Assembly (NCBI GenBank): GCA_016748015.1
Contig: JAAOMT010000760.1
Coordinates: forward strand, 124,001-188,000
Length of the DNA: 64,000 nucleotides
Direction of reading: 5' to 3'
Source of the DNA: Geosiphon pyriformis uo1
Lineage: Eukaryota > Fungi > Glomeromycota
Numbering within the stretch: position 1 is the stretch's first letter; each line of letters opens with the position of its first letter. A program made the translations under genes and the position numbers. Shown piece after piece: positions 31,941-63,129 of the stretch. Below the pieces are notes generated by a model, which was given only the letters and a program-made list of their open reading frames with translations, had not been told where the DNA came from and did no database searches.

Positions 31941-32010
<70 letters not shown>

Positions 32011-32014
32011 AAAA

Positions 32015-32046
<32 letters not shown>
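31941..32046 (+). repeat. Poly(A) tract (A68-TAAAAAC-A31) at the gene/retroelement boundary
   Basis: Read directly. Confidence 0.9.
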
Positions 32047-32379: not shown

Positions 32380-34700
32380 AAACTCTTTTTGTCTCCTTAA
32401 TTTTATGACCACGACCAGAGCAAAGAGTAAAAAAGCTGCACCTGATATCTGTCCTGAAATATCTAATAAAATTTCAACCAGAGGAGCTCTCTCTGTTGTA
32501 GAAGCAACTAGACAAAACGTTTTAAAAGCCTTTTCTTTACTCAGTAATCGTGATAAGCTGTCTTTGGTAACCACTGAAACAATTTTCTCATCTTTGGCTG
32601 GTTTTTCACCAGTCAAAGTTTTCTCAAAGAGACACACTTGAATTAGTTCTAGTGTTGCCTCCACCCCAACCAAGAGCCCAAAAGTTTTTAATAATAGACC
32701 AGTAAATAAGCTGGTTTTCTCCTCCATAAATTCAACACTTGGTGCTGCTAGCACTACCTCTTCAAAAAAAAAATGGTCAAAAAGACCAAAAGTTCAGAAA
32801 AGTAGGGACAGTCACTTGCCTCTGCTATTGTTACACCGAACTCCTTTGTGGTTCCCAATGAGATCTTAGATGAGATCTCCATAGCATCATCCAGCATGTT
32901 GTCTAAGATGGGCCAAGATCAACCACTGGCTGTGTTGCCAAATATGGTATCTTCCAGCAGATTATTGCTGGTTTTAGAAACAAAACAATCTTCTCCTATT
33001 GGGTTACCTATTCTTGGGAACTGGGCTGATCAAATAGAAATTGAATCATCTTCTCTTCTATTTCTGGTGCTACTTTTGATGGTGCTTGGGAAACTATTAC
33101 TAGTTGTCAAAGGTTTGCTGAATGGATGGCCTCCATTCTGGTGTTTGGTGCTACTTTTAAGATCAAATTGGCTTATGTTAAGGCTGTTTTTCAGTCTGTA
33201 CATGGTTTTTTGGGTGCTAAATCTGTTTCAAAAGACAATATAAAGCTTTTCTGTGTGGAGTTTGCTTCTCAACAGTTTTTGAAAGCTGTGTTTCTAGTTG
33301 AGCTTACAAGCTCTGTTCACTTGGCCACTTTCAAAATTACCAAGTCTTTGGTGGTTTCTGAATCTGGTTCCTCTTCTGTTACTGTTGCACTGTGTGATGT
33401 ACTTTTGGGTGTGTCAATTGCTAATATTAAGACAGCTTTTAGTATTTGGTGAAGTTGTCTGTGTTGTGCTAAAGTCTGCTGGTGTTTGGCAGTATGTGGT
33501 TGTTTACTTTAAGGAATTGGATGCTGCTACTGCTGCTCTCAATCATTGATTGATTTTGGTGGGCAAAGATAGTGTTAGGATCCTTCTAGTTATTAATCAG
33601 AATGAGGCCATTCTGTTTTGTGATAGGTTTAAGGCCAAGTTGGTCAATTTTCCTTCTGGCTGCACAGCTTTTGAAATTAGTGATATGATTTCTTGAGTTG
33701 GTGGGTAAACATGCTTCATCCCTTGGTCTCCTAATTCTGGTCATTGTTTCCAGTTTGCTTTGGTTATATTTGACTCTTAAAACGATTTGGATTCTGCTGT
33801 GGTCAAGACTAGTACTCTAAGGAAATGCCATATCTGGTGGGAAACTCCTGGCTGCCAGCACTGCTTTAGGTGTCAAAAAGTAGGCCATCTGGCTGCAAAT
33901 TGTAAGGTTTTTCTGCCTCTCTCTTCTAAGGCTCCTAAGATGTTTAATACACATTTTGTGAGTGGTGTTTCTTATACAAAAGCTTTTGTCTCTCTAAATG
34001 TTTCTGAATTTCTTCTTTTGGTGGCTTCTGATCTGCTAGCTCCTCCGCTTGCTGCATCTTTTGTTGCTCCTGTTGCTGACTCTACTGTTGAACTTAGATT
34101 GAATTCTATGGAAAAACAGATTTTAGATCTGACTGCTTTGGTTAAGTCTGTCATTAAGCCAATTAGTTCTTTGGTTATGTTGGTTACTACTCTTTTGAAT
34201 AATAATGTGGTCAAGGCTCTAAAGGTTGAGAAAGATCTCCTGACTATATGTAATGCCTCCAAGGGCTTTGTTGATTTTTTGGTTGGTGTGTCTAAGGATT
34301 TTGCCAGTCTTAAGGCTGAGGTGGAGTTTAGTAATCTTGATAATAATGATATTGATGCTGCTAAGGCTTCTCTATTGAGTGAGGACACAATTGATCATGC
34401 AGTTGCCTTGTGGCAAATGTGTGGTCCTAAAGTTAAAGGTAACAGTGAAAAAACTAGATTGTTTTTTAGTGAGTTTATTTTTGATTCTAGAAATTTGAAT
34501 GGTATTATTAAGAGACTTGGTGAGCTGGGTTTTCTCCCGGCTTTTTTTGATTCAGCTTAGTTGGTACTTTGACTAATTCAGGTGGTTGGTCATATGTAGA
34601 AAGAGTATGAAACACATCTAATTTGTAATTCCATAGTGACACAGTATATTAGATAGTATTTGGGCACACTTTTTTAAAACATTAATAAATAAAAAAATTA
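32380..34700 (+). mobile_element. ORF1-only non-LTR element (HAL1-like), degenerate
   Basis: One broken reading frame 32405-34560 (MTTTRAKSKK...PAFFDSA*) with the same RRM-like blocks as the LINE ORF1s (GVWQYVVVYF, LVGKDSVRI) and a CFRCQKVGHLAANC knuckle. It is followed directly by the LINE-type 3' tail (GGTGGTTGGTCATATGTAGAAA, 34581) and an A-rich end; no ORF2. Confidence 0.8.
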
Positions 34701-35569
34701 TAAAATATTATCAAATAGTTTTAATAGCTATTAGTATTTTATTAATAAAAAAACCACCAATTATTTTATGTAATAAAAAAAGTAAAAAAATATAGCTTTT
34801 TTATTTTTTGTTTTAATTATAATTATAAAAAATGAGAAAAAACAATTTTTTTTTAAATATTTATATGTAAAAACTAATAAATTTTAATTGTAATTAATAT
34901 AAAAATACTTATTAGTTATTTTTTATTGTATTTTTTATTTTTTAAATATTGTAAAATTATTAAATATAAATTTAATATGCTTTTTTAGTTATATTATTAA
35001 TTATTATTTAATAAAATATAATTTAATTACAATTTATTTTTAAAATTTAAAAATCTAAAATAAGATTAAAAATTTAATAAATTACTTTGTTATTTTTGTT
35101 TAATAAATTAAATATTAAAATTATACATAACAATATTTATCAATATAAATTATTTAAAAAAATTTTTAATTTTAAGAAAATTATTAAAATATCTATTTTT
35201 TAAATTAAAATTATTTTTTTTATATTTAAAAACTATTACTTATAAGCTAAAAAAACTTTTTTAAATTAACTTAATACAATTAAAAACATATTAAAAAAAC
35301 AATTTATACAGTTTTTAATTAGTATTTATTAAAATAAATATTATTAAACATAATATGCACAAAAAATATATAAAATTTTATTAATTAATTATTAATTTAT
35401 TTAAAAAAAAAGTTTAACAAATATTTTAACAATAGTTTTATTTAATTTTTAATAAATTCTGAATTTTTTTAATTGTTTTTGTTAAAAAAAAAGAAAATTA
35501 AATTTGTATTAATTATAAAAAATTTAATAATATTATAAAAAATGCTTAAAATTAATAATATAGTAAAAT

Positions 35570-38500
35570 TATTAGATTTAACAAGTGCAGCCCAACCACT
35601 ACTTAATTACATAAAATTAACAGATCTTATATTAAGTATGGCTCATACATTTTCCACACGTGACCAGCCACTTAAGCCAGTTAAGGCAATACTATACACC
35701 AAGAATACCAGCCATAAGAAAATCACATAGAAAACCAAACTGCACACTATTTAAGTAAGGATGGAAACCAAAACATGTATGTATACCTAACTTAATCCCA
35801 AAATTATGAACTATGTCACAGGACCAAACCAAAAACAAACCAGTCACTAACAGAACAATGGATCTATCACGTGGCAAAAGGCCATGTTTCTTATAATGGG
35901 CCCTCAGTTTGGCCCTTGGCAGCCATATACTAGACCTGTAATTCTCAGCAAAACGACAAACCAGGTCAACCATCAGGGATCCACTATTTGATTCAATCTT
36001 CAAAAACCACTTTGTTTCAGCCACCCAGTCTTTAAACACGAAACCTTTGGACAAAGACATGTACAGACTATTTAAGTCTGTAGCCTCATAAAGTGAGCAA
36101 ACCACTACATCACAGGTGGCACGCACATCTACTAAAATTGTTTAATCTTTGATGGCTTCTGATATTAAGTCATTACAAATATTGATATTGAAAACACAAA
36201 CAAATGTGTGATCTGAATCTTCTAAAAGTCCATAATAAATGCACAATACACTAGGATAACTTAGATTATATAATTTTTTTCTCTTGGCCACAGGCAACTG
36301 ATGGTGCAAGGCCTTTATAAAGTACAAACGGAGCATCACAGAAGCAAAACTTGTGTAACCAGACTTAACCAGACCATCTGCGTACCACACGTTAAAAGTA
36401 TGATGCTTGTCTATCAAACCACTGAGAGATTTATTAACTATGCCACTTGCATACCTGGATTCCCACCCAACAAGATTAACAGCTTCATAAAGTCTCCTAA
36501 CCACGTAACAAGTGTTGCCAAAAAGAATTCTGTCTTTTATACTAAGAAAGTGGTGCAACATTTTGACAGGAAAAATAAAACTAGAACCAGCAGCACTGGC
36601 AAAAAAGTCAGCATGTTTGTTGCCAATGACACCAGCATGGCCTTTTACCTTATTTGATGTACCAAAAAATTTTTTGACAGAATAGTATCACAAATAAATT
36701 CACATTCCATCCAGCATTTTCTTCTGAAGTCCAGTTTGGTGCTTACTAAGGTAGTCACACATAAGTCCAACAAAGCCTAACTATCAGTAAACAACACTAC
36801 TGAGCTATGACTAGGAACACAGTCCAAGGCTAGAGTAATTGTCTGTATTTTCACAAGTGTAGAAGACAGTAAACCAGAAACTTTAACACTAACACCAATG
36901 TCAGCACTAGGGAAATAAGCGGCAGCGCTACCACTAGCACCAAAGAAACCAAAATCTCTAACTGAACTGTCAGTATAAACAGGTATAACATCAGAACCCA
37001 TCCGTCTTAGATGATCCTTAACATAACCAGTGTTGTATGAGAAAAATTTGGAAAAGGGGAGATACGATAAGTTGCTACTACCAACCAGACCACCAGACTC
37101 AATAAATTCCACAAGAAAAACAAACCAACCAGGTATTAGTCTTCTAGAATTCAACTTTTTCCATCTATGAAACGTATTCCATGTAAAACACCTGTCACAA
37201 CAGTTTAAAAACTGGTTCACATAGATTATCCCAAATCTTCTGAGCAAACCTACCACTTTCATGTAAATGTCCAGTCCAAAGACATTAGCAGCAGCGACTT
37301 CACTGCTTGCATGAAACACATTAGTCACACTACTTCCTAAGGACAGACCACAAGATGAAAGTGTGTTTGTTATGCCAGCTAAAAAACAGTCTACAGGATC
37401 ACCCGGAAGCATCATTGGAAAATTGAAAGGGTTTCAGGACAGCCAACTAACGGCCTGCAGATCTATTGTATGGTGTTTGAACAAGTTGCCAAGTATGCCC
37501 ACAGAATTGGCAAAGAACACAAAATTGGCCAGTGAATTTTTGACTAGGAGCTGCCTAAATAGCACCATGTTATATAAATCTGGATAATAAAAAGCCTCTG
37601 TGGGAAAATTTTTAGGCAGATTAGCCTTGAGTTTCAGATCTTTTCTCAACAACTTGTTCCATTTTTCATACACACTAATAGGAACATGACTAAATTAGAG
37701 CCTATAATTAATGATAGGCTGTAAAACAGCAGAAACTAAATACAGAAATTGTTTATCAGAAACTGTTTTCCTTAGAACCAAGTTCGTAAAAAACTTCAAG
37801 TCCAAATATGCCTTAACAATACTAGGGTGAGAAAGTCCCTCAATTGATAAAAAAATGCCCAAGTATCTATGAGCCTCACATTTTTTCGCTATTGTAATGT
37901 TCAATTTACTGATTACCAATTGAAAATTGGCAGCTTTTTTGTTGATTGGTATCTACATTGATCGAAATGTCATTGACACAAAAAAACTTATTAGCAATAT
38001 TTAAAATACTTTAAATAGCAGTCAAGCTGTTCCCAATTCAGATTGTATCATCCACAAAGGCTCCAGCAGCCATAAAGAACACCTTGCTAGACCCAAAATC
38101 TAGTTTGCCAGTGCATGTAAAGAATCTGGATTCCATTCTATAACCATATGCATATCCAAACTTCTTGACCTCGCAAAGCAAAGGATCATAAAAGATTCTC
38201 TACAGTAATGGAGAGAAAACTTCTCCCTGGTTAAGTCCATCATAGACTGTGTATCCTGATGTCAACCCAAAATCTGTCATAACATGGTTTATCCAACCAT
38301 TGTGAATATTTTCAAAAAACTTAACAAAACGAGGACACATTTTGATCCTGTTCAGACTATTTTTCAAGTAATACCATCCAACAGAATTATATGCTTTTTG
38401 CATGTCCTGCAGCACCAATCACACTTCTCTGCTCTTTTTCAGAGCATCTTTGACCACCAAGCCAACAGCAAAAATTAGAGAAAAAGTAGACATGCCCCTC

Positions 38501-41500
38501 AAGACTAAAAAGTTGTCACCTTGGAGAACATCAAACTTGCTATATGCTAAAAAGATCTTATCTGAGAGCAGCTTAAAAAGCACTTTGCAAGCAGTCTTGA
38601 TCAGAGCAATAGGTCTTGTGTTGGTCAAAGTACCTTCCCATTCATACAGTTTGGGTATCATGGAAACTCAGGCTCTCTTTCATAGCATAGAAACTATTGT
38701 TAGAGTCAGACATGTTACAAATATCCAATAAACCACTCAAAACTCTCTTGTCACAATGTTTCCACAGTTAATTGGTAATACCAGAAAATCCAGCTGCTTT
38801 GCCATCTGGCAGGTTACTAACCACCACCCACAATTCATCCAAATTGAAATTGCTCATAACATTTGCAAAGACACTAGAGTCAACATGAACCAAGAGAGCA
38901 TATTGAGCTGACCAGCAATCTGGCAGAACTTTGGGCACCATATGTTTTTTTGTCCATCCTTCCATAATTGTATCAATGTTTGACTTGACATTACAAGGAT
39001 CCAGAATTAAATTATCATCTACTATCAGATGGTTGAGCACTACCTTTCGAACTGGCTGGTCTAACACATTTTGAATCATGCGCCTTTTATCAGAGCTAAA
39101 GTTCTCTATATGCTTGTTGATTGCTTTCCTGATGGAGTTGTCTCTTGCCATTCTGAATTCATAATACTTAGATTTGCAGTATTTTTTCCTCACACCTGCC
39201 AGATGCCAAAGAGCCATTTCGGTCCCAACATTGTTATTAATTAGGGCTTCAAACTCGGAAGCTTCTGTTTCATCAAGACCATACCAAGTGTGTAAAAAAC
39301 AAACAAAGTCAACAGTGCAATCCAAACTCAGACTCTTCACAATCTTTGCCACCAGAAGCTCTAACCTAAAAAACTTGGAAAAATATTTGTTCCTTATACA
39401 CTCAAAGTCACTGAACCAACATTTGGAGAAAATCTTATCAGCTGACATCACTACTGCTTCTCTTAGAATGTCCCACATTGTATCCAAATTCCCAAGGTCT
39501 TTTGTCATGTTGAATTTAGGCAAACTTATAGCAAATCTATCAGACAAGCATTTTCTAAAATGTAGCTATTTACCAGCATCAGCATCTTTGATCTTGAATT
39601 TCCACTTGTTCCTATTGGCTTGCTTACATAAACTATTTAGATTGGAATCCACAAGACCTCTCAACCCAATCAAAACTGAAACTGCTTGATGATTAGTGTT
39701 GAAAAATTCCACAATAGAGCCAACCTTGTGACCAGTAACAGTGAAAGACAAATTGCAACTAACAAAGATAAAATCAATAGTTCTCTCAATCTCTCACGAG
39801 TTGGACTATGTAGAAGCTTCAACTAGTACACAGCCAACAAATAAATTTATTAAACCCAAATCAGAACAAAACTTGACATTCGCACTCTTCCTTTTTCCAT
39901 TTTTATTGAAATTCCCATCCAAAACCACAAATGTGCTAGAATTAACTGCTTTGGCAATGAGAAAATTAATGGTAGAAGCTTGATTAAATCTTGATTCAAT
40001 AAAAGCACTGGCATACAACCCCATAATAGATATTGAAATCTTGCCCTTAAAAAGAAGTCTAATTGAAATAACCTGCCCAGGAATCTCTTCTACCTTAGAA
40101 ACGTGCCAAACCAGATATTCATTCATGATAACTGCCACACCAACTCCTAAAAAACTCTCCTTCAGCCCAGAAGTGAATATCCGCACACCATTAAATTTCT
40201 TTATAATTCATGGTCTTATGCTAGACCTTAATTTAATTTCAGTGATAAAGGAAACCATGTTACCCGAACTCATGTGCTACCATATGACATCATTCTACTT
40301 AGCTGGAACATTAAGGTCTCTAATATTGCATGTACCAAATTTCCAAATCAAGTTACTCATTAAGAAGTGAAGATACCCAAAAGCCTGAGTTAGCACACAA
40401 TTGATCTAACTTCACCAAAACTGAACCAATAGAGACCTCAAGAGCCACCAACTTAGACTCTAACAGCCCACCTTAGTTATCAAAATCTTTGAACTACTGG
40501 GTTCCAAAGCTGAAACAACAGGGGAATGTACAGACACCACTACAGAACTTTCCAGGACCATATCTGAATTTAAATCCAATTTGACATTTATCAATGTAAC
40601 TGGACTGTTAGAAGAAGATGGGGAAACTAAAGGCACCAAATCTATGCTGTCAAGTTTGTGCAAAATGCCAGACACTTGATCACCTAAGAGCTCCAAGGAG
40701 CATTCCAAAGATGACAAACAAGCATTTAAAGACAAATTATTAGTCAAAGCGAAAGGAGAACCACCACCCATATCTGAGGCACCAGAAGAAAAGGAACCAG
40801 AACCAAAACCAGACTCGAATAAAAGACCACCAGAAGAAGAGGCAGAAGAAACTATTTGAGCCCAAGATTTGCTGCCAAATGCAGCAGGGCAAAAAATAGG
40901 AACATTTTTTTTGGCATACAACCTAGCCAACTGAACATAAACCTCTTCAGAAGCAGTTTTTTTATAGGTTTTTTTAGATAGAACAGACACCAGAGTGTCA
41001 AAAGCATCACACTTCAAAGCTGAATGTTCAAACTTTCCATATTTCTCACACTAAACTAAGTCCAACCTAGCCCAAGAAAGTCTTATACCACCAAAAATCG
41101 GCTCTGTGTGAAACACACATTCAAGCTCATTTTCAGACTCAAAATTAACAATGGTGCAATGGGTCCAATTGCCAGTTTTCAGAGAATAATTGATTACACA
41201 AGTTTTCTTACCAGCTCTTTCTAAAAGAGCACCAAAATCATGAGCTGTTGTTCCTACTGGCAAAGTGCCTTAAAGCAATTTCTAGACATCCAAGTATTAC
41301 AATCTCCTACAGCCATAGCCACATGTACTGAATCCTTCTCAATGAGGAATGACCATCTTGATGCCAGTTGTTTAGCCTGTTCCAATTTGGCAAATTCCAC
41401 CACAGCCTTCTACCACATACCAATCAGTTGAATCTTGATTGACTTAATATTACCAAACTCAGATACTACAGCGACAATCATTTCCTTTGGCGTATTCATG

Positions 41501-42338
41501 GAAATTTTTTTGATTACTACAGTCCAATCTGAATGAATTTCTTGTTTTTTGAGATTGCTATTTACGATAATTACCTTCTCTCTGGCCAATGATGTAGTCT
41601 TAATTAAGCTTTCTTCAGAAGTAAACGTTGATTGGATGATCTCTTCAAATTTTGAAGAGGTGGTGACCCCCTCAAAACCATTGACTGTTGAAAAAATTTT
41701 CCTAATTAATTGAGTCTTTGCCGTTGCTGATTTACCTTCCACAGCTGAGAGATTAATATCCAAAGCAAATGACTTTCTAATTGACACTTCCACAGAAGTC
41801 TTGACAATTTTAAGATCAATCCACTTTTTTTTTAAAGAGATAGGCAATTGAGAAGAGAGCACAACTTCATTATCATCCATATGAAAATTAGGAGAGCTGA
41901 GTGAAGAACCAAAACCAGCACCAGTGTTGACTCATTTTGTCTTGGGTGTAATAGCAGCTGAACCCAAAAGAGACCCACCATTTGTTTCAGACATGCTAAC
42001 ATCTTCATCCTCATTAGATAGACTCTCCACATCAGAATAAACACTGCCATTAGATCCAAATTTGCTCAAGAATAAATTTTTTTCATTACCAGAATGTTTT
42101 ACATTACCAAGAACAACTTTTTTCTTCTGAGAAAAGAAGCCACCAGCAAGACCACAAAAGGCGCTTAGGAGCCTTCTTCTTAGGTGCAGTGCTACTAGCA
42201 GTAGCCTCCATATTCACAAAAAATGGGTTACTATTAGGTAAAGAAATATTGATATAGACTAAAAAAAACAAAAAAACTTCTTTTTCAGAAAATGCACTTT
42301 TTTGGGGATTTGTGGAGGTAAGAGAGAAAGAAGTTTTT
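35570..42338 (-). mobile_element. Full-length LINE copy 1 (ORF1 ~42211-40357; ORF2 40360-35692), many stops
   Basis: APE (VVLDGNFN), RT (RPIALI, LQDMQKAYNSV, GLNQGEVFSPLL, AFVDDT, YLGIFL), RNase H (VYTDSSV), C-terminal Zn-finger remnant, conserved 3' UTR. Confidence 0.93.
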
Positions 42339-42349
42339 TATAGTAAAAT

Positions 42350-45300
42350 TTTTTTATTATTACATTTAACGAGTAAGGTTCAAATGCGATCTAGGACTAT
42401 ACATCATATAAATGATCTAAACTAGAAGTGAATCATGTTTTTTCTACACGTGACCAGCCACTCAGGCCAATCAGAACAATACTATGCATCTATCTTAACA
42501 GAGACAAAATTCCCTATACCTAAGAAAAACAAACAAGGTTTACGAAAACTGAAACCAACACCAAAAGCCTTAACAACACCCAACAACCTGATCATACCAG
42601 CCAAAAGCACCATAGGTAAACCAGAAACCAGAGCAGGAATGGAACCATCATGAGGAATAAGTCTATTCCTCTCCATAAAAGCTTGGTGTTTGGCATGGAC
42701 CAGCCAAAATTTATCATAAAATGTGAAACAAAACTCATGCACAAAACACACAATATTTGAAGCTGCAACCTTAGCATCCTTAAAGACCAAAAAGAATTCA
42801 TAGTATCAATCATTGAAAACAAAACCCTTACACAGAGTAGTACTAATTGTAGCATTGGAAAAACAAGAGGCCAACAACTGCAAGACACATGAAGTAGATC
42901 AAGAGAAACCAGACTGCATTTTCCAAAAAAACACATGAGCATTCAACAACTGAGCATGACCAGCAGCATCAAAAGGACAAATGAAAACATGGTCTGAGAA
43001 TTCTACATCACCACAGAACAAACACACCACACTCAGGTAGCACTTATCATACAAATGCTTATGCACAGTAACAGAAAGCTAATGATGGAGAGATTTCATA
43101 AAGTATGTCTGAAGGCCAACAGTACATGCACTAGTAAAACCAGCAGCCAAGTGAGAATTAGGGTGCCAAACCAAAGTAGACTTAGACCAGTTAACACCAT
43201 TGTGCAAACCAGCTGCCAAGATCTGAGAACCAGAACCAACCTTTCAACGTGCACAAAGAATAGACTGAAACATATTACAAACAAAGTGCCTAGAATTTCC
43301 AGAAACCACATTGCTTTCAGCCTTCAAAAAACGTTTACTGACCAAATGTGGCAAATGCCAAGTAGAGAGCGCCACATCTTTAGCAAGCTCATCCACATGC
43401 TCATTGTCTGAAATGCCCAAATGACTCTTAACTTTAATCCAATTCACAGTTAAGTTCTTATGACAAATTACATTAGCAATATGATAACACTCTATTCAAC
43501 AATAATTCCTGAAGTCTGGACGAGCCAATAATGATTCTAACTTGCACACATCCAAAGCAACTTGGCTATCTAAGAACAAATCAACTGCACAAGAAGAAGG
43601 AACACACTCAAGAGCCAAAGCAATGGCCTGCAATTCAGACATAGTAGAAGAAACCAAACCAGATACCCCCACACCTAAACCAGAATTAATGTCTTCAAAA
43701 AAGACCACAGCCCCAGCTTTCATGACAACAATTCCCAAACCACTCAGAGACCCATCCGTGTACACAGAAAAGTGGGCAGTGTTAGTAGCCAACAGATTGT
43801 CACAGATAACACTAAAATCATAAGATTGATGAACATCAGACAAAATGGAATTTTTCACAAGAGAGGAGCATGCAAAAAAAGAAGCAACACCACCAAGAAA
43901 ACACACAGAAAGATCAAACCAGAAAGGAATCAGGCCATGGGGATCCAACCTCTTCCAATGCTTGAATGTCTGCCAACTAAAAACAACACCATTTCAATTA
44001 CGTAATTGTTCCACAAAAGCGATACCATATCACTTGAGTGAAGAAACACATTTTAGAAAATTGATTTTACCAAGAACAAGAGACATAGGAATACCACTTT
44101 AATGATGGAAAACACAGACCAGAGACCCACCCAGAGACAGATCACATCTGGAGAAAATACAAACCACATCTGCTAAGAAATTATTTGAAGAACTGATACT
44201 AACACGAGCCAGAAACAGCAAGAGGTGATGAGGATGCCAGCTGAGAACCTGGAGATCGTGAGATCTGTAAGAAAATAAGTGGCCCAAAATACCAACTGAA
44301 TTTGCAAAAGCAATGATGGAGACCAATTTGCTTTCTGCCTGAATTTGTTCAAAAGTCTTCAAACCATACAAAGAAGGATGATGAAGTGCATCATTGGAAA
44401 AATCAAGCAGCAGCTCAGACTTAGACTTCAAGCTTTTGTGAATCAGAGCATCCCATTTATTACATACACTAATAGGAACAAAACTGAACTGAGTCCTGTA
44501 GCTGACAATAAGAAACAGAACAGCAAAAACCAAATAACTGAATTGTTTATCCGAGATGGTCTTTTTCAGAACAAGATTGACAAAAAATTGGATGTCCGAG
44601 TGAGTCTTGGCCAAGCTGGACACCGAAAGACTATTAAAAGACAAAAGAATACCAAGATAATAATAAGGTTTACCCTTTTTGGCTATAGAAATAGATAAGC
44701 CACTGACAGTTAGGTAAGAGGTCTCAACCCGGCAGTTGATGGGAATAGCCACAGTTTTGTTATTGTTAATCGAAATGTCATTAATCCTGAAGAACTCACT
44801 AGCAATGTCCAAAATGTGTTGTGTAGTAGCCTGGCTGCTACCAACCCAGATGGTATCATCAACAAAAACACCAGCAGCAAAAAACAATGTCAACTCAGCC
44901 TAAGATTCCACACAGCCAGTATTGGAAATGAAATGTGAATTCAATCTGTAATCACACATCTCTCCTTGCCTCTTGACCTCACACATAAGCAAATCATAAA
45001 ATATGCACCAGAAAAGTGGTGAGAAAACTTCACCCTAATCCAAACCATCATAAACCACATACCTACTAGTTAAGCCAAAATCTGTTATTATTCTGTTCCT
45101 GCAATTATTGTGGATGCTACCAAAAAATTTAATGAATCTGGTACACATTTTAATCCTGATCAAACTTCTCTTGAGATGTTCCCAACCAACTGAATCATAT
45201 GCTTTGTGTATGTTCTATAAAACCAGCTACAGCTCTCTGTTTTTTTCTAAAGCATTCTTGACCACAGAACCAATGGCAAAAATGGGCGACTGCATTGTCG

Positions 45301-48300
45301 TACCCTTTAAAACAGAAAAATTGTCCTCTTGTAAAATGTTAAACTCACTGTAAGCTGAAGATATTCTGTCCAATAAGATTTTGGAAAGAATCTTGCAGGC
45401 TGTTTTAATCAAAGTGATAGGACAGGTGTTCATGAGAACACCCTTCTATTCATAGAGTTTAGGAATCATCGAAACCCAGGCTTCTCTCCAAGGTCCAAAC
45501 ACCGACTCACAAACCAGGCAGAGATTCAAAAGCACCAAAAGCATATCCAGAACCACTCTGTTGCAATGCTTCTATAATTCATTAGAGATGCCAGAAAGAC
45601 CAGCTGCTTTTTTATCAGGCAAGCTTGAAATGACACTGAACATCTTATCAAAACTAATTGATTTCATGACACCAGAGAAAACACCATCAAAAATGTAATC
45701 CAAAAGCCAAAATTGGCATTTCCAATTATCAGAAAAGTCCGAACCCACCAATCATCTCCTAGTCCATCCCTCTATAATTCCGTTCACTTTAGATTTAACC
45801 AGCTCAAGTTCCAAAACCAACTCACCATTTACTACCAAATGATCCAATACTACCTTGTGAAATGAATGCTCCAAAACACTTCTGATAGTACAACTCTTAT
45901 CCAACTCAAAACTCTCTATTCTATTCTCAATGGCCTGTCTTATATGAGATTCCTCAGCACACTTAGATTCCAGCATCTTAGAAGAGTGGTAAGACTTCCT
46001 TACCTTAGCCAGTTCAGAGCAAATACCATCAAAACCAGATCCTGAAAGGAAAAAAGACTTCACTAATGAAGTACCAACAGAGTCAAGTCTGTTCTACATA
46101 TCCAACAACAGAGCAAAATTACCCCCAAAAATCAAACAGGAGGCCTTTACCAGCTTAAAAACCAGCAACTCCAGCTTATGAAACCTAGAAGACACCTTAT
46201 TGAAAACATTGTTAAAATCTTTGAACCACTTTTTCATGAAAGTTCCACCTGCTGAAAGAATCATAATTTTGCGAATAATATTCCACATCACATCCAAATC
46301 TGAAAATTTCTCAGCCACAACAAATGCATCTGAGAACATAAAGGCATTGGCAGCCATATCATCCCTGAACTCAGCCCACTTCAACTCATTTGCATCCTTG
46401 ACATCAAACTTCCAGTAATCTTTGTTGGCCTGCTTATGTATCAAAGAAAGTCTTGTGTTCAACAAACCACCCAGACCCACAGAAATAGAAACAGCCTTAT
46501 GATCAGTGTCAAAAAAATTATCAACATTTAACACGCCACAATCCATGATTGCATTAATCAAGTTAGAAGAAATAAACACATAATTAATTGTCTTAGCAAC
46601 ACCATGAGAATTGTACCAAGTTGGTAACTTAGCAAGAGAGCTCCCACCCAAAGAGTTGACCAAACCCAAATCAAAGCACTTCTTGAAACTGGTGCACTTG
46701 TAAGATCCGTCTTCATTAAAGTTACCACCAAGAATAACAAAGGAAGATTCATTTACAGCTCTAGCAATGAGAGAATTAATTTCATTAGCCTAAAAAAAAC
46801 AAACTGTCAAAGAGGCACCAGCATACAGCCCCAAAATGGAAACAGAGAGTCTGTTCCTGAAAAGCAATTTTACTAACAGAAGCTAACCAGGCACCTCTAG
46901 AATCTTGCACACATGTTTCGCCAGAGATGAGTCCATAATAATTGCAACACTAGATCCCATGTGACCAAAATCCAGATCTGAAGTAAAAACACGAACACCA
47001 GCAAACCTATCCACAATCCAGGAGCAGATCTTTCCCTTCAATTTTGTTTCAGTAACAACAGAAATCAGATTGTTCATATTATTATGCCAACATACAATGT
47101 CTGCCTGTTTCACACAATTGTTCATTCTTCTAATATTGCATGTAGCAATCTTTCAAGTAAACTCACTCATTGAGAAGGAGATTGTGGAAGTATATCAGCA
47201 GCCAGAGCCAAACTGTCAAAACGAGCAGACAAATTCAGCACTGAAGCAGCAAGACCTTCTAACATATTTTTCAACTTGACAACATGGAGGGACATAGAAG
47301 AGTCCTTCGCAGTATAAGTAGCAGTAGCAGTAGCAGTAGTAGTCTCATTACAAGCAGACTCACCCGAACCCACTCCCATCACTATATCCTCCCCTTAATT
47401 CTGTGATAAGAGGGTCACTGGCAGCTGACATCTAGGGCTAGGCTGGGAAACTGCTGGCATAAGTAACTCCAATCTCTTAGCCAACTCACCAATTTGTCCC
47501 ATAAGGCTGACAAGACTGCTTTTAATGCTGACCAACTGTTTTTCCAAATTATTCACAACAAGAAAAAGAGGTTTACCATTATCAATGGAACCAGAAGAAA
47601 GAACCTGTCAATGAGAAGAAACATCAAGAGGAGTACCAACTACTGACACCCAAGTTCTTCCACCAAACGAAGCCAAGTGAGAGACAGGAGCTGATTTCCT
47701 CTTATAAATTACAGCCAAACAAACACAATTCTGATCAGAAACCACTCATCTCCTATGAACTCCAGAACTCCCATCCACAGAGCAATTGGCAGTGATATGA
47801 CCAAATTGTATATACTGTGTACAATATGCCAAGCAAAAACCAGCCCAGCACAAATTCACACTCTTGAAAACTGGAATCAAACCAACAGCAGCCAACTTGG
47901 ATGCCTCATTCTCAAAACAGATTACAGCACATTGATTATAAACATATGAGAAAGGATTATGGCCAATAAAACAAGTCTTCCCACCATATGATTCAAGTAA
48001 ACCAGAGAGATCATAAGCTGTAGTGTCAACAGGTAAAGTATACAACAATGCCCAATATTAATCCCTCAATACCCATGTTTGTTTATCCTCCACAGCCAAA
48101 GCCACATGCACAGAATCTTTTCCCACCAGAACAGACTACTTGGAAGCAACCTGGTTGGCAATTTCAGCTGACTCAAACTTTACTAGGGCCTTTTGCCAAA
48201 AACCAATTAACTACATCCTAACTGATTTGATTGCACCAAACTTGGAAAACACTGCCACAATTGCCGATTTGAAAAAATCTACTGAAATCTCCTTGATGAT

Positions 48301-49234
48301 CACTTCTTGATCTGATTGGTTGTTTATCTTTCTAAAATTATCATTCACCACAATATTTTCACAAATCACCAAATTTCTAGCCTTTTTTAGACTTGATTCA
48401 GATGTAAAAAAAGATCTGATGATCCCAAGAAATTTTGAGGGAGTAGAAGCTCCCCCAAAACCATCAATTTGATAGAAGATTTTTTTTATTGAAATTAACT
48501 TGTCACTAATTAATTTGCCAGGCACCACAGAAAGCTCAATATCAAGTGTGAAAAACTTTGTTGAATCAAAACTTTGCGTTTCCAGAGCACATGACATGAG
48601 TGGCAGCAATTGATTGAAACCACTAAGCATGTGAAAAGGGAGCTCCAGTGCACTATTATTGTCACTCACATTGTTGAAAAGGAGTTGCTTCATTGGGTTG
48701 CCTAAAGCATACGTTCTGGTGTATGTTTTTCTTGGCATAGCTTCATTCATGTCATCGTCCTCACCAGATTCTGCGTAGCTTGTTTCTTCAGTAACCAAGT
48801 TTGTCATATTTTCTATATTCAAAAGACTGCTCACACTGCTCGCTATATTACCGACATCACTACCCCAGAACACTGCAGGTTTGGCATCAGCTTTACCCAA
48901 ATCTTCCAAGCTGAGAGGACCAGCAAATGTATTGATCACACCGCTAATAGCAGCAGGCTTCTTAGGTTTTTTGTAAGATGCACCATATGAGTGAGCACTC
49001 GCCAAACGTTTAGATTTAACACTAGAATGAGTTCCCAAACCTGCCAAAACAGAACCTGAACCACCAGCAGAAAAGCCTGTCAGTTCTATATTAACAAAAA
49101 GAGGTGTACTGAGAGAAATAACTTTAAGACAAAAGGGGAAAAAGGAAAAAAGAAAAAGCTATTTTATCAATTTACTTCTTGCTCTTGCTATGATCAGAGG
49201 ATTAACAACAGAAAAAGTTTTTTTTTTTTTTTTT
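42350..49234 (-). mobile_element. Full-length LINE copy 2 (ORF1 ~49089-47167; ORF2 47170-42482), many stops
   Basis: TETKLK, FDTDH, VFVDDTIW, YLGILL, VYTDGSL, ELQAIALAL, WIKVKSHLGISDNEHVDELAK, CLFCGDVEFSDHVFIC; conserved 3' UTR and A tail. Confidence 0.93.
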
Positions 49235-49245
49235 TATAGTAAAAT

Positions 49246-52200
49246 TTTTTTTTTTTTAATTTAACGAATGAGATCTACACACAACCTAGCACTATACATC
49301 AAAGAAATGATCTAAACTAGGTGTGAATCATGCATTTTCTACATGTAACCAGCCACTCAGGCTAGTCAGAACAATACTACACAGCTATATAGATAGAAAC
49401 TGAATTACCAATGCTGAAGAAAAACATGCAAAACTTGCAAAAACCAAAATGCATACCAAAAGCTTCATCGATACCAAGCAAATCAATTACACCAGCAAAA
49501 AAACGCAAAGTCAAACCAGAGACCAAAGTAGGAGACAAGCCATCTAAAGGAATCAGTTCATGCTTTTCCATATAGGCACAATGTTTGGCATGAACCAACC
49601 ATATCTCATCTCTAAAAGCGAGGCCAAAAGAACGTGCAAAATTAACGATTTTCAAACATGCCACCTTGGGACAATGGAAGACGGAGACAGCTTCACAAAA
49701 CCAATTATCAAAAACAAAACTCTTATGAAGAGCCATGGACACTGAGGAACCTAAAACACAAGATGACAACAACTACAACAAACATAAAGAAGAGACAGAA
49801 GAACCAGAAAGCGTTTTCCAAGTGTCCATGTGAGAATCTAACAACCGATGCCAAGCAGAATCATTGACTTTACAAGAAAAAACATGATCCGACACCTCCA
49901 CATCACCACAATATAGACACAACACACTGGGATAAAGTCTATTATAAAGCCGTTTTTGAACAGCCACAGGCAACCGATGATGCAAAGCTTTCATAAAATA
50001 AGAGTGTGCATTAGCCGAAATCCTGCTAGTGAAACTGGTGGTCATATGCAAATTAGGATGCCACACCAAAGAAGAGTGAGACCAATCAACATCAGCCTGC
50101 AAGTTGTCAGGCAAAAACTTAGAACCAGACCCCACTTCCCAACATGCACAACACATGGCATGAAAAGTGTCATGGACAAAGTGCCTTGAATTGCCAGAGA
50201 CAATGTTGCCATCAGCCATCAAAAAGTGTTCGTCCAGGCAAAAAGGAAGAAACCAGTCAAAAACAGAATCAGTACTGGCAATCACATCAATATGCTTGTT
50301 TCCCAAAACCCCAGAATGACTTTTGACTTTGTGCCAAGCAACATTTAGAATCTTACTGGAAATGACATTGGCAATGTGTTGATGCTCAATCTAACATCAA
50401 TTCCAGAAATCAGGAGCCATCATACCCAATTCTGATTTGTAAGCATCCAAAGCAGACTGACTATCCAAAAACAAATAGACATTACTAAAAACAGGAACAC
50501 ACTCGAGAGCCAATGCAATTGCCTGTAACTCAGCCATGGTAGATGACATCAAGCCAGACACACCAACACCCAAACCCATACCAATGTTCTTGAAAAAAGC
50601 CACAGCACCTGCTTTACAGCCAACTGTACCCAAATTTCTCAATGACCTATTAGTATAGACAGACAACACTCTTGCATTGACCCGCGAAAGATGATCACAG
50701 ATAGACACAAAACCAGAAAAACCCAGAATGTCCAAAAGACCCATATTAGCAAGAACTGGGATGCAAGCAGGAGAGAAGTTCTTACCAGCAAGAAACACAG
50801 CAGAAAGCCTGAACCACTTAGGAATAAGGCCACGGGAGTCCAGTTTCTTTTATTACTTAAATGTGGACCAATCAAAGACTGTACCATAACGATCACAAAT
50901 TTGGTTTACAAAGGCCACACCATACCACTAAAGTGAGGAGAGACATTTGGAGAAAACTGATTTACCCAAAACAGTTGACATGGACATCCCACTATTGACA
51001 CAAAAGGAATTGGCAAAGGATCCACCCAGAGACAATTTGCAATTATAAAGCACATGAATCATACCTACCAAAAAATTATTAGAGGCACTAACACAAATGC
51101 GAACAGGAGAACTCAACAGATGAATAGGGCGCCAACACAAAACCTACAGATCATGAGACTTATGAAAGAACAAACATCCCACAATCCTACCAGAGTTGGC
51201 AAAATTAATAAGAGAAGCAATCTTGTTTTCAGATTGAATCTGCAGAAAAGATTTCAAACCATAAAAGGAGGAGTGGTGAATTGAATTACTAGAAAAGTTG
51301 AGTGGAAGTCCAGATTTGAGCTTCAGGCCCTTACGAATCATAGCATCCTACTTGTTGCAAATGCCAATAAGAACAAAGCTAAATTGTGTCCTGTAGCTAA
51401 TAATAGGCTGGAAAACCACTGAAACCAAATATAAGAACTGCTTATCTGAGATAGCCTTTTTTAGAACCAAATTTGTAAAGAAACAAATGTCCGAATGCAC
51501 TTTAACTAAATTAGGTCTGGAAAGACCCTCAGTTGACAGAAATATGCCCAGATACTAATAGGATTCACCTTTTTTGGCAACAGAGATAGGTGAACCACTA
51601 ATAAAAAGAGCGGAATTTCCAACTCTACAATTGATGGGAATAGCTACAGTCTTGTTATTGTTTATTGAAATGTTATTAATCCGGAAAAACTCACTAGCAA
51701 CATCCAAAATGTGTTGAGTAGTGTTCTGACTACTGCCAACCCAAATTGTATTATCAATAAAGGCGCCAGCAGCAAAACAGGAAGAAAGCCCAGCCTGCGA
51801 CTCGACATGACCACTCTTGGAAACGAAATGAGAAATTAGCCTGTACTCACACATACTCTCCTAACACTTGACTTCACACAAAAGGGGATCATAAAAAATG
51901 CACCACAGAAGAGGGAAAAAGACCTTTCCTTGATCTAAACCATCATGAATCCGATAACCATCTGTCAAACCAAAATCTGTCATGACTCGATTAGTGCAAT
52001 CTTTGTGAATGCTGCCAAAAAACCGAATGAACCTGTTGCACATTTTAATTCTGACCAGACACTTTTCCAAATGCTCCCAGCCAACCGAATCATATGCTTT
52101 CCTTATATCCTACAAGACCAGCCAAAGTTCTTAGTTCTTTTTCAGAGCATCCTCAACAACTGAACCAACTGCAAAAATAGGGAACTGTGTCGTCATATCT

Positions 52201-55200
52201 TTCAAAACCAAAAAATTGTCATCACGAAGGACATTATGAGTGCTGCATGCTGAAAAAATCTTGTCTGAGAGTATTTTGGAGAGAATTTTACAAGCCATCT
52301 CAATCAGTGCAATAGAATGAGTATTTGTAAGAACACTCTCCCATTCATATGGTTTGGGAATTATTGAAACCCAAGCTTCCCTCTAGGGGCCAAGGACAGA
52401 TTCTTCAGATAAGCAAGAGTTCAAAAGCACCAAGAGCATATTAAAGACCGAAATATTGCAATGTTTCCAAAGCTTATTTGAGATACCTGAAAGGCCAGCA
52501 GCTTTGCCATCTGGCAGGTTGGAGACAACCCCAAACAGTTCGTCAAAGTCAATCAAACTCATTACACCAGAAAAAGCTTCATTGAAAACATAACTTAGAG
52601 AATGATACTGGTGACTCATCATTAACGTCAAGCACCACCTTTCGCTTTCTAGTCCAACCTTCCATAATCTCATCCACCTTGGACTTTACTGGAGCAGGAT
52701 CTAACACCAGCTCATCTCCTACCACCAAATAGTCTAAAACCATCTTGCAGAAGGGTCATTCCAAAACACTACATACAATATGACTTTTGTTCAACTCAAA
52801 ACTCTTCATTCTTTTGTCAATCACCAACTTAATCTGGGATTCTTTGGCACAATTTGATTCTGACAACTTAAATGAATGGTAGGATTTCCTGATCTTGGCC
52901 AAAGCTGAATGAATGGTATCAAAATGGGAACCTGAAAGAAAAAGAGAATCTACAACAGAAGCGTTAGCAGAATCAATTCCTTTCCATGTATCAAGTAGAG
53001 AAACAAACTCCTCATGAGAAACCAGATAAGAGGCTTTGACAATTTTCGACACCAAAAGTTCTAATTTGTGAAATCTGGATAATACTTTATTATAGACACT
53101 ATCAAAATCTTTAAACTACTTTTTTTTGAAAACATTCTCAGCCGACAAACACACCACTTGGTGAAGGTGACCCCACATTGTGTTCAGGTCCAGACTCATC
53201 TTGGCAGCATAAAATTTATCATGGAACATGGCAGCATTCGCTGATGTATCTTCTTTAAACTTGATCTATTCAGTATCACCAGCATTCACAAAATTGTACT
53301 TCTAATGATCCTTATTTACTTGTTTGCGCAATGTGTTCAACTGCACATCCAGCAAACCACCAAGACCCACAGAAACAGAAACAGCTTTATGATCAGTATC
53401 AAAATACTCTTCAACACCAGACACATCATGATCCAGAATTGTATTAACTAGACTCGACAACACAAACACATAATCAATAATTTTAGCCACTCCATAAGAA
53501 TTGGCCCATGTAGCTTCCTTTCCAAACAAGCTTCCATTCAAGGAGTTGACCAAACCCAAATCAAAACATTTTCTGAAGCTGACACTTTTATGAGAACCAT
53601 CTTCATTGAAATCTCCACCCAAGATGATGAAAGAAGACTCATTTACTGCCCTCGCAACCAAAGAATTGACATCATTCACCTAAGAGAACCATACTGCTAA
53701 AGATGATCCAGCATACAGCCCCAAAACTAACACAGACAGTTTATTTTTGAAAAGAAGCTTGATAGAAAGAAACCGGCCAGGAATGTCCGAAACCTTACAC
53801 ACATGCTGAGCTAAGAAATTGTTCATAATGATTGTGATCCCAGAACCCATGTGACCAGAATTCAAACCAGAAGTAAAAACCCGAACACCAACAAACTTGT
53901 TCATGATCCAAGGGCGAATCCTATCTTTCAACTTAGTCTCAGTAATAATTGAAATCATATTGTTTATTTCTTTATGCCAATGAATAATATCCTCCTGTTT
54001 TGCAAGATTGTTTATTCTCCTAACATTGCACATAGCAATTTTCCAAATATAACTGGTCATTGAGACGAGGAGAGGACCTGAGGACCCGAACCAGCACACA
54101 TCTGCTCTAACTTCGCCAAAATCGAGCCAATGGAGGCATTGAGGGCAACCAACTTTAACTCTAAAATGCCAATTTTAGAAGTTAGCACCTTGGAACTACT
54201 CAGACCCAATTGAGAATTGTCATTGCTAGAAGAGAGAGAAATGGACTGAATTAAAGGAACATCTAACACCATGTTGGAACCCAAGTCAGAGTCATCAACT
54301 ATAAGAGAATCAGAAATGGATGGGTGAGGAGTATTCACAGAAGGAATTACACTAGAAGGAGGAGTTAAAGGCACCAAACTGAGATTGTTAAGACGAAGAA
54401 GAATGTTCGAAATTTAATTAGATAAAAGCTCTACAGAGTACTTAAGGGGGAATCAACCATAGAAAGAGGGGGAAGAGTACCACCTGAACTTGAAGCACCA
54501 AAGAACAGAGAACCAGAACCAGAGCCATCACGAAAACCATAAGAGACTGAAGCAACTGAGACCACTTGGGCTCAGGATTTGCCTCCAAAAGCAATAGGAC
54601 AAGAGATCGGAACTTTCTTTTTAGCATATAATTTGGCCAGTTGGAGATAAGTATTTAAGTTAGCAGGCCTTTTAAATGACTTGGGTGACTGAGAAGCTGA
54701 TGCAACCTCAGCATCACATTCCAAAGCAGAATAACCAAATTTCTCACACCATTCACAGCGAACTAAATCCAACCTAGCCCATAAGAGTTTCATACTACCA
54801 AAGATTGGCTCCATGCAAAAAGCTGACTCCATAGCTTCATTAGATTCAAAACAGACTACAGCACAGTGAGTTCTATTGCCAGTCTTTAATGAATGATTGA
54901 TAACACAAGTTTTCTCACCAGTCCCTTCCAAAAGAGTTCCAAAATCATGAGCTGTTGTTCCTACTGGCAATGTGAACAGAAGTGCCCTGAATTGATCCCT
55001 AAAAGCCCATGTCTCATGATCTCCCATGACTTTTGCCACATGCACAGAATCTTTTCCAATTAAGAAGAACCATTTTGAAGCCAATTGCTCTGCCTGTTCT
55101 GGTTCGGCAAATTCCACTACAGCTTTTTGCCACATGCTGATCAGCTGAATTTTGATTGATTTAATTTCCCCAAATTCAGACACTGCGGTGATGATCATAT

Positions 55201-56028
55201 CTTTTGGCGTGTCCATGGGAATTTTTTTGATCATCACAGCCCGATCTGACCTAATTTCTTGTTTCTTAAGATTGCTGTTTACTGTGATGTCATTTTTCTT
55301 GGCCAATAAAACAGTCTTTTCCATGCTTGCTTCAAAGGTGAAGGTAGATCTGATGATCCCTTCAAATTTTGAAAGAGTAGTGGCCCCCCAAAACCATTGA
55401 TTCTTGAAAATAATTTTCTTATGGTGTGAGTTTTGGCCATTGCCAATTTCTCTTCTATAGCCAAAAGATTGATGTCCAAAGCAAAAGATTTTTTTACAGC
55501 CACTTCCACCTGAGTTTTAATGATTTTGGGATCAATCAACACCTTATCCAAAGAAAAAAACTTATGGAGGGGAAGAGAAACCTCCTCTTCCTCCTCCATG
55601 TTGAAATTAATAGAGCCAAGAAGGGAGCCAACAATCGCACTATTATTGAAATGCTTGGCTTGAGGTGTATTCATCTTGGAATCAGATACTTTTTCACCTT
55701 CAGAAGCCTCTCCATCAGTATCCATGTTATTAAACTGCCTGACCACTTGACCAGATCCACTACCTTTGAGAGCCATATCACTACTTGATAGCTTAGCACC
55801 ACCAGGAGGTTTCTTGACCTTATGACTTGAATCACTACTAACTGAACCAGAAGTTAGAACTCTGGTCGACCTTTTTTTAGCACTAATACCACTCATAGGA
55901 GCAGTCAAGTCAACAACAAAAGGATTTGTTTCTTGTAAAATGATGGAAGACAGTATGAAATAGCAGAAAAAACTTCTTTCAAAATATGCTTTTTGAGGAT
56001 TTTAGGAGGTAAGAGAGAAAAAAGTTTT
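49246..56028 (-). mobile_element. Full-length LINE copy 3 (ORF1 ~55900-54057; ORF2 54060-49377), many stops
   Basis: WKIAMCNVR, ILGGDFN, IDYVFV, FDTDH, GLDQGKVF, AFIDNT, RNase H, CLYCGDVEVSDHVFSC; conserved 3' UTR and A tail. Confidence 0.93.
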
Positions 56029-56151
56029 AATTTATATAGTAAAATCTAAATAATTTTAATTTTAAACTTAATTAATAGTTATTTATAAATTAAAATAAAT
56101 TGAAAAAAACAGTATTTACTATGTAAAAAAATTATTGTGTTTTTTGTATTT

Positions 56152-59100
56152 TTATTTTTTTATTTTTTTATTTTATTTTAACGAGTAAAGTCCAAATGCA
56201 ACCTAGTGCTATACATTATACAAATGATCTAAACTAGGTGCGAATCATGCGCTTTCTACACATGACCAGCCACTTGGGCCAGTCAGAACTACACTATACA
56301 CCTATATGCACAGAAACTGGATCTCCAATACTTGAAAAAAATGGACAGAACTTATAAAACCTGAAACTAACTCCGAAAGCCTCAGCCACCCCCAGCAATC
56401 TGACCACACCAGCCAAAAACACCATAGGCAAACCAGAAACTGAAGCAGGAGCGGAGCCATCATGTGAAATCAAACCGTGTCTTTCTATAAACGCTTGATG
56501 TCTGGCCTGAACCAACCAAACATCATCCCGAAATGCTAGACAAAACTCACGCACAAAGCTCACAATCCTCCTAACACCCTCCTTAGAATCTTTAAAGACC
56601 AAAACAGACTCACAAAACCATTCATCAAAAACAAAGCCCTTACACAGAGCAACACCAACTCCAATCTCAGAAACACAAGAAGCCAAGGCCTATAAGACAC
56701 ATGAAGAAGAGTGAGAAAGACCAGAAAGAGCCTCCCAAGCTGAAGCATGTGCACCCAACAAACGAGCATGGCCAACGGCATCCTGAGGACACAAAAAGAC
56801 ATGATTCGAGGTCTCAACATTACCACAAAACAGACAGACCACACTGGGGTATCTCCTATCATATAAACGCTTGTGCACAGCAACAGGAAGCTGATGATGG
56901 AGAGCCTTCATAAAGTGAGTACGACAGCCTGCCGTGTGCATGCTGGTAAAACTGGATGCCAAGTGAAAATCAGGGTGCTACACCATAGAAGACTTAGACC
57001 AATTGATATCAGCACGTAAACTATCATCCACAACACAAGAACCAACTCCAATCTCCTAACGAGCTTGATGAACTGACTGGAAAACATTACAAACAAAGTG
57101 TCTAGAGTTACCAGAAATTGCCGTACCACCAGCACATAGAAAACGTTCACTGACTAAATGAGGTAGGCGCCAAGCAGAGAGAGCAGCACCTTTGGCAAGT
57201 GTATCAGCATGCTCATTGCCTAAGACACTTGAATGACCTTTCACCTTAACCCAATTCACATCCAAATTCTTTTGATGAATGATGGTGGCAATGTGACGAC
57301 GCTCAATCCAACAGTGGTTCCTGAAATCCGGATGAACCAGCAAAGACTCCGACCTACATGCATTCAAAGCAGCCTGGCTATCCGAGAACAAGTCAATTGA
57401 ACGAGAAAAAAGAACACACTCAAGGGCCAAAGCTATGGCTTGTAGTTCTGTCAGAGTAGAAGAAACCAAACCAGACACCCCAACACTCAAACCCAAATTA
57501 ATGTCCTTAAAAAAAACAGCAGTACCTGCTCTCATGTCAATAGTGCCCAGACCAGAAAGAGATCCATCCGTATACACAGAAAGGCAGGCAGCATCAATGG
57601 TTGGCAAAGTGTCATAAATCACACCAAAATCATGAGAAAGACGAATATCAGACACAGCATGACCATCCACCAAAGAAGAACTTGAGGAGAGAGGCACAAT
57701 GCTACCAAGAAAGCGAATGGAAAGATTAAACCAGAAAGGGACTGGGCCACAAGGGTCCAGTCTCTTCCAATGCTTGAAGGTCCCCCAACTGAAAACATCC
57801 CTATTATGGTCACAAAGCTGTTCCACGAAAGCAATTCCATAACACCTGAGTGAAGAAATGCACTTGAAAAAACAGGATTCACCAAGAACCAAAGACATAA
57901 GAGTACCGTACTGATGACGAAAAGCACAAGCTAGAGGGCTTTCCAAAGACAAATCACACCCAGAAAAAATGTGAACCACACCCACCAAAAAATTATCCGA
58001 GGGACTGATAACAACACAAGCCGGAAACAGCAAGGGATGACGAGGATGCCAGCTGAGAACCTGGAGGTCATGAGACCTATGAGAAAACAAGTGACCCAAG
58101 ACACCAGTAGAATTTGCAAAAGCAACAACGGAGGCCGATTTACTCTCAGCCTGGATCTGTTCGAAAGTTTTTAAATTGTACAAAGAGGGGTGATGAAATG
58201 CATCACTGGAGAAATCACGTGGCAATCCAGACTTGGACTTTAAGACCTTGCATACCAAAGCATCCTATTTATTACAAATACCAACAGAAACGAAACTGAA
58301 TTGAGTCCTGTAGCTAATGATAGAGAAAAGAACTGCAGACACCAAATATGCACACTGTTTGTCCAAAATTGCCTTTCTCAAAACAAGATTCACAAAAAAC
58401 CATACATCAGCCTGAGCTTTAGCCAAGCTAGGCTTCGAAAGACTCTCAGAAGACAAAAAAATACCCAAATAGTGATGAGATTCCCCTCTCTTGGCAATGG
58501 AAATAGGTGCACCACTGATAGTTAAATGAGGATCCAGCACCCGGCAATTAATGGGGATGGCCACTGTTTTGTCATTGTTAACAAAAATATTTTTAAACCT
58601 AAAAAACTCACTAGCAACATCAAGGATGCATTGTGTAGCAGCCTGGCTGCTACCAACCCAAATAGTATCATCGACAAAAGCGCCGGCAGCAAGAAACAAA
58701 GACAGCCCAGCTTGAGGATCCACCCAGCCAGTTCTTGATATGAAATGAGAATTCAACCTGTAGTCATACACACTATCCTGTCTCTTGACCTTGCACAAAA
58801 GTGAATCATAAAAAATATGCCAGAGAAAAGGCGAGAAGACTTCTCCCTGATCCAGCTCATTGTAGACACAATACCCATCAGTCAAGCCAAAGTCAGTCAT
58901 CACTTTATTGACGTGACCATTGTGAATACTGCCAAAAAATCTAATAAATCTGTCACATATTTTGATCCTGACTAGACTCTTCTTAAGATGTTCTCAACCA
59001 ACCGAGTCATAAGCCTTGCGCATGTCCTGTAAAACCAGCCAAAGTTCACGGTTCTTCTCCAAGACATCCTCAACCACAGAACCAATAGCAAAAATAGGAG

Positions 59101-62911: not shown

Positions 62912-63129
62912 TTTTTTGTATTTATTATTATACCAATAATATTATAATTATTAATAAATATTACATATTTAAAACTTTTATAAAAATTAGTTGTTTTTTA
63001 TTTAGACAATATTAATATTTATTCATTTATTTTAAAACTTATTTTTACTATTTGTAAAAATTAAAATTTAATATTAAAAAAATTATTTAACAAAAAAAAT
63101 TTAATATTTTTATTTATTTATTAAAGTTT

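Follow-up and report, generated by a model that had tools for sequence, protein, structure and literature searches.

The window analysed here is a stretch of 64,000 nucleotides of contig C634 of Geosiphon pyriformis, a root-symbiont-related fungus whose assembly comprises 128 Mb in 792 contigs. It holds an array of three LINEs, about 160-180 kb into the contig, which runs beyond 245 kb. Ordinary genes lie to the left of the array, which is interstitial, and no telomere repeats were found in the 64-kb window. The genes of the window include those for an OPT oligopeptide transporter (4885-6768, minus strand) and a tyrosine-kinase-like protein (14206-15231, plus strand). A near-pure A run of 106 nt (31941-32046) may be what is left of a tail, or else a homopolymer artefact of long-read sequencing. 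The plus strand carries, at 32380-34700, an ORF1-only element that is HAL1-like and whose 3′ end is of the LINE type. It has a direct repeat of 11 nt (at 32352 and 34697), and its ORF matches ORF1 of the fourth LINE, LINE 4, at 26%. An old, AT-decayed LINE 3′ end is found at 63120-64000, about 200 nt past the head of LINE 4 and in the same orientation. The array and LINE 4 consist of the following features, in which TSD stands for target-site duplication:

35559-35569, minus strand: TSD copy 1 (outer), after the LINE 1 tail; 12 nt with position 35558
35570-42338, minus strand: LINE 1 (E1), full length, dead; ORF1 at about 42060-40643, ORF2 at about 40344-35743; very short tail
42339-42349, minus strand: TSD copy 2, flanked by the LINE 2 tail (A-rich) and the LINE 1 head (5 A)
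42350-49234, minus strand: LINE 2 (E2), full length, dead; ORF1 at about 48981-47185, ORF2 ending at about 42491
49235-49245, minus strand: TSD copy 3, flanked by the LINE 3 tail (12 A) and the LINE 2 head (A-run)
49246-56034, minus strand: LINE 3 (E3), full length, dead; ORF1 with RRM, ORF2 at about 54053-49380
56035-56045, minus strand: TSD copy 4 (outer), before the LINE 3 head; 12 nt with position 56034
56152-62911, minus strand: LINE 4 (E4); its own 12-nt TSD at 56140-56151 and 62912-62923

The three array LINEs are arranged head to tail, all on the minus strand, each 6.8-6.9 kb long and each filling one interval between copies of the 11-mer TATAGTAAAAT. The 11-mer is exact at 35559, 42339, 49235 and 56035, as the earlier note had reported, and occurs nowhere else in the window; the two outer copies have a 12th base in common. 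Allowing for the AT content of the flank, the same 11-mer would be met at three further junctions by chance with a probability of about 1e-11. Read in the sense of the elements, the array begins with flank, motif and LINE 3 head at the outer 5′ junction. It continues with the 12-A tail of LINE 3, the motif and the 17-A head of LINE 2, then with the A-rich LINE 2 tail, the motif and the 5-A head of LINE 1, and ends with the short LINE 1 tail, the motif and flank. A single A precedes the motif in LINE 1, and the head of LINE 3 begins with T. LINE 4 lies about 95 nt from the array, lacks the 11-mer and is a separate insertion outside the shared site; that it has its own direct repeat had already been pointed out.

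Each array LINE is laid out as a 5′ A-run head, ORF1 (RRM), ORF2 (endonuclease, RT and RNase H) and an A-rich tail, with a 5′ UTR of a different type in LINE 2. Homologous ORFs are present in four of four elements of the window. ORF1 matches Pfam RRM_1, with a CCHC motif seen by eye in LINE 4; ORF2 matches RNase_H, and also Exo_endo_phos_2 and RVT_1, both under the curated cut-off. The hallmarks of LINEs, namely an A-rich 3′ tail, a TSD and absence of LTRs, are found in the window. Judged from these predicted proteins, an endonuclease/RT ORF2 and a nucleic-acid-binding ORF1, the elements fit the APE-type non-LTR retrotransposons (LINEs). Matches to R2 and L1 ORF2 in PDB were not significant, and the named homologues are all Geosiphon pyriformis proteins. 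The LINE 3′ UTRs (35575-35720, 42360-42505, 49258-49402 and 56178-56320, minus strand) are predicted to fold into one common multibranch RNA, with compensatory change in 6 of 38 pairs among four sequences only.

Pairwise identity of the three array LINEs over the ORF2 region is 54-66%, and each belongs to a subfamily of its own; the array is therefore not a tandem duplication of one element, in agreement with the divergence pointed out before. The LINE 1 subfamily is small, with about 5 relatives at 83-88% identity, and those of LINE 2 and LINE 3 have about 17 (86-89%) and about 32 (86-91%), all three counts being lower bounds, i.e. at least these numbers. All three elements are dead, with 15, 18 and 18 in-frame stops in ORF2 of LINE 1, 2 and 3 and CpG observed/expected ratios (O/E) of 0.18, 0.18 and 0.26, so that decay is equal within error. 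LINE 4 is younger than these (8 stops, CpG O/E 0.43). Among LINE copies L001-L030, C>T and G>A make up about 70-97% of changes, and CpG O/E is 0.17-0.56, against 0.84 in the gene-rich flank.

The LINE family is large and dispersed, with more than 1,200 copies in the genome. The 3′-end motif has 1,227 matches genome-wide, against 44 for a control, and one head type has 300. Many copies are full length with sharp 5′ ends, and at the sampled loci most are solo and lie in AT-rich DNA. Their 5′ ends carry a short run of about 4-17 A, and the bases immediately 5′ of 28 other heads have a strong A bias. A TSD of about 11-12 nt appears typical of the family, on the basis of the shared site, LINE 4 and the ORF1-only element.

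Among other elements of the genome, the 11-mer was absent after 29 of 29 LINE 3′ ends and before 28 of 28 LINE 5′ ends sampled, and in the genome-wide search the exact 11-mer precedes a LINE head in this window only. As it is missing from these 57 element ends it is specific to the locus, and is thus a re-used TSD common to three insertions. The objection that had been foreseen, that the motif is an intrinsic end of these subfamilies, is thereby excluded, and the alternative that one motif marks many loci, which would have meant sequence-specific targeting, does not hold. A conserved target sequence of the R1 or Tx1 type was likewise not found, the flanks of the 57 other ends being unrelated. 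Searches of the window returned no tRNA or Rfam match and no tRNA, rRNA or other RNA-gene target. An 18-nt outer TSD, with LINE 3 inserted first, was also considered and rejected, as the likeness after the motif is at chance level and is equalled by 19% of random flank pieces.

Stacking elsewhere in the genome was assessed by counting tail-motif, gap and head-motif junctions in 31-nt gap bins. There are 13 head-to-tail junctions at 8-38 nt (one of them in this window) and 9 at 39-69 nt, against a background of 5 at 100-130 nt and 5 at 250-280 nt, an enrichment of about 2-fold (p about 0.03); T-rich sequence has probably contributed some of the matches by chance. Of 28 other heads sampled, 2 are seated on a tail, and none of 29 other 3′ ends carries a head. 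Exact repeats of the junction spacer were sought at six junctions. At C682 a second copy of the spacer stands 6,744 nt upstream, immediately in front of another LINE head; a downstream copy was searched for and not found. At C705 a LINE tail lying 8,766 nt downstream is directly followed by the first 7 nt of the spacer, a weaker case since the full 12-mer does not recur. No repeated spacer was found at C701, C423, C669 or C706 by this test, whose sensitivity is low because it demands exact matches and assumes a TSD of 13-15 nt or more at C669 and C706. Partial TSD sharing is therefore seen at one clear and one weaker locus among six, neither with both outer copies. Re-use of element boundaries recurs in a small minority of copies.

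Three further loci were recorded in passing. At C669:2160649-2167526 two 3′ ends lie 6,823 nt apart, the second directly followed by a head and with differing spacers, and this is a probable LINE chain. C609 has, at about 254270-254600, a decayed mini-element in which a LINE head and a LINE 3′ end together span about 330 nt; another LINE head follows directly downstream of it. On C729 the same 13-mer is found at 948908 and 956248, 7,340 nt apart on one strand, possibly as the TSD of another insertion.

The array is best explained, with a probability that we put at roughly 0.55, by repeated target-primed reverse transcription at a site that renews itself. LINEs of this family enter AT-rich DNA, have an A-rich tail and an A-run head and produce a TSD of about 11-12 nt, as seen at this site and for LINE 4. 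In the array one copy of the target stands beside an A-tail and another beside an A-head. A later element, of any subfamily, would nick within 0-2 bases of the old boundary and duplicate the TSD again. The tail would put a T-run on the strand from which reverse transcription is primed, and an A-run in the head would serve the second nick or the pairing of the 5′ end, in line with proposals made for Zorro3 (PMC1965478) and Alu (PMC2836564). The inner junction of a pair would then read tail-A(n)/TSD/A(m)-head, where a first nick anywhere in the T-run and a second in the head A-run would leave the visible 11-mer unchanged. As nick positions would be free within the A-runs, a third insertion could do without an exact cut and so be easier than the second. 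LINE 2, in the middle with A-runs on both sides, is consistent with such a third insertion. Stacking would on this account be a by-product of an A/T-tract preference that is modest genome-wide, rather than of dedicated homing.

Several observations support re-cutting, namely the locus-specific motif, the three subfamilies, the A-runs at the junctions, the A-biased bases before heads, the enrichment near tails and the loci C682 and C705. Published precedents speak for it as well (PMC2718515, PMC5932611, PMC1965478, PMC2836564). Other observations count against it. Near-exact re-use of both nicks is still required in at least one step, because only one A precedes the motif in LINE 1 and LINE 3 has a T at the start of its head. 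Re-cutting allows, but does not predict, that the three copies are equally decayed, and the lack of a repeated spacer at four of six junctions, with no positive showing both outer copies, also weighs on the negative side. If the 1,500-2,600 copies include 8-30 shared-site pairs, which are rough inputs, the expectation is 0.03-0.6 triples; with an expected number below one, a triple by independent re-use is uncommon, and possible. Nearest-relative identity and CpG decay point faintly to LINE 1 as the oldest and LINE 3 as the youngest, both measures being confounded by subfamily size and composition. The claim that three independent insertions used one site thus stands as regards the locus-specific TSD common to all three and is weaker as regards their separate timing: decay is equal within error, and no intermediate allele was seen.

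Separate timing is dispensed with if the elements were primed serially within one event, the main rival reading, which we consider unlikely. Here the reverse transcriptase, having copied the first RNA, would go on to copy the 11-nt single-stranded overhang of the target, which brings the 3′-OH back to exactly the original nick, and the next RNPs would prime from this unligated nick before repair, in the order LINE 1, 2, 3. Both boundaries would be re-used exactly without re-cutting, and equal decay (CpG O/E and stops) beside a younger LINE 4 is what this model predicts. That evidence discriminates weakly, however, because most copies of the LINE 2 subfamily are similarly decayed (9-12%), and decay also varies with local methylation. 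Common structured 3′ ends could permit trans-priming, and template jumping by R2 and endonuclease-independent head-to-tail tandems are on record (PMC11371274), although the passages describing them mention no TSD between units and our literature search turned up no example of serially primed templates separated by a TSD. Three subfamilies would have to be expressed in one nucleus at once, and the 12th base common to the outer copies only and six extra bases at the LINE 3 head are left unexplained. That all three elements were written in one event, with the nick regenerated at each copying of the overhang and RNPs of different subfamilies priming in turn, is a rather doubtful proposition. It is improbable, in our judgement, that the site itself is easily cut owing to DNA shape or chromatin, with resident copies playing no part. 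LINE 4, the ORF1-only element and the old LINE end are all found no more than about 1 kb from the edges of the array or of LINE 4, junctions are already numerous in the background bins (100-280 nt), and Zorro3 re-hit the same sites in 3 pairs of 30 insertions (PMC1965478). Yet a first insertion replaces one side of the site and the 11-mer was nonetheless kept, all three LINEs share one orientation, and the 11-mer is not a preferred target elsewhere.

The earlier note had suggested a dedicated system, in which related LINEs would home to the boundary of a copy already in place and stack up there in safe-haven arrays. The triple itself, the partial recurrences at C682 and C705 and the chain at C669 speak for it, but most copies are solo in AT-rich DNA, no target sequence is conserved, the head-on-tail counts in the samples are those given above, and the 22 junctions within 69 nt stand against at least 1,227 3′ ends, with enrichment only about 2-fold. 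Homing of this kind is therefore very improbable; as the main mode of the family it is largely refuted, and it could survive as a property of one rare subfamily only. It is scarcely credible that the array is an assembly artefact or a recombination product. None of the contigs listed bridges the tested junction; on the other hand, short-read contigs, from one run that may be the assembly's own sample, cover 30 of 30 bins of 39400-45300, with no joint at the motif and no loose end there among those listed. Each element is unique, its nearest relative being at most 91% identical, so there is nothing for an assembler to collapse, and neither an assembler nor unequal exchange would set one locus-specific 11-mer between elements of 54-66% identity.

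As it stands, the array widens the known range of double insertion with a re-used TSD, which now includes a fungal LINE family whose copies are dispersed, and three subfamilies at a single site. We found no description of mixed-subfamily TSD re-use in Glomeromycotina in the literature searched, and a survey of transposable elements in arbuscular mycorrhizal fungi contains neither "tandem" nor "nested" as a whole word (PMC11952901). Because many copies are full length with sharp 5′ ends, this genome would allow shared-TSD pairs to be counted and their ages estimated. Such a census could decide between re-cutting and serial priming, and would inform models of how 5′ junctions form. The second-strand or 5′-joining step of target-primed reverse transcription is still poorly understood, and if the one-event reading were true the array would be a fossil of that step. 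The array does not reveal a usable safe-harbour targeting system.

Among known systems, Zepp of Chlorella and Cnl1 of Cryptococcus are LINEs that build arrays by inserting into, or beside, copies of themselves; these arrays are subtelomeric, and much of the family is found in them. The present array resembles these in that LINE copies are stacked on their own kind, but it is interstitial beside ordinary genes, and most copies of the family are solo rather than in arrays of their own kind. Insertion of Alu and L1 into the A-tracts of resident elements was reportedly described by El-Sawy and Deininger in 2005. A-tracts of resident elements are hot spots for Alu/L1, and the visible TSD there equals the nick spacing minus the A-run (Levy et al., PMC2836564). 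Alu and L1 depend on the mammalian L1 machinery with its TTTT/AA nick, a consensus that the empty site of the array does not fit. Zorro3 of Candida albicans has A-runs at both ends and targets A-tracts, with a proposed pairing of its ends with the target (Goodwin et al. 2007, PMC1965478). Like the array LINEs it is a fungal LINE with a 5′ A-run that uses the same sites repeatedly; it differs in its pure poly-A insertion without a mixed-sequence TSD, whereas the array LINEs have a short head A-run, mixed TSDs of 11-12 nt and an RNase H domain.

Two further parallels are R1 tandems and the dimers produced by double insertion. R1 of Drosophila, which is sequence-specific for 28S rDNA, forms tandem arrays with a 14-bp TSD between units, a new element entering the TSD of one already in place (Stage & Eickbush 2009, PMC2718515). 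In some species there are as many as 2-3 of these tandems per inserted unit, and in D. ananassae R1A tandems lie upstream of R1B, a different lineage (PMC2718515). As in the present array, head-to-tail non-LTR units are split by a TSD, but the Geosiphon family is dispersed and seldom forms tandems, and the array occupies a unique AT-rich target. The dispersed elements jockey and P form head-to-tail dimers by a second insertion, with the TSD kept in the junction (McGurk & Barbash 2018, PMC5932611). The dimers reported from double insertion are of one family, and LINE ones are mostly 5′-truncated (PMC5932611). The array shares with them dispersed elements and a TSD in the junction, and differs in consisting of three full-length copies of three subfamilies. 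Its units are separate insertions, each with its own subfamily, and its junctions hold a copy of the flanking target duplication, in four exact copies. As the tested defining features of the sequence-specific R1 type and of the Zepp/Cnl1 type were not found, the array belongs to neither; by analogy, it appears to work like R1 tandems and jockey or P dimers. It is a real, clean and somewhat unusual case of the known double insertion, in a triple, mixed-subfamily form.
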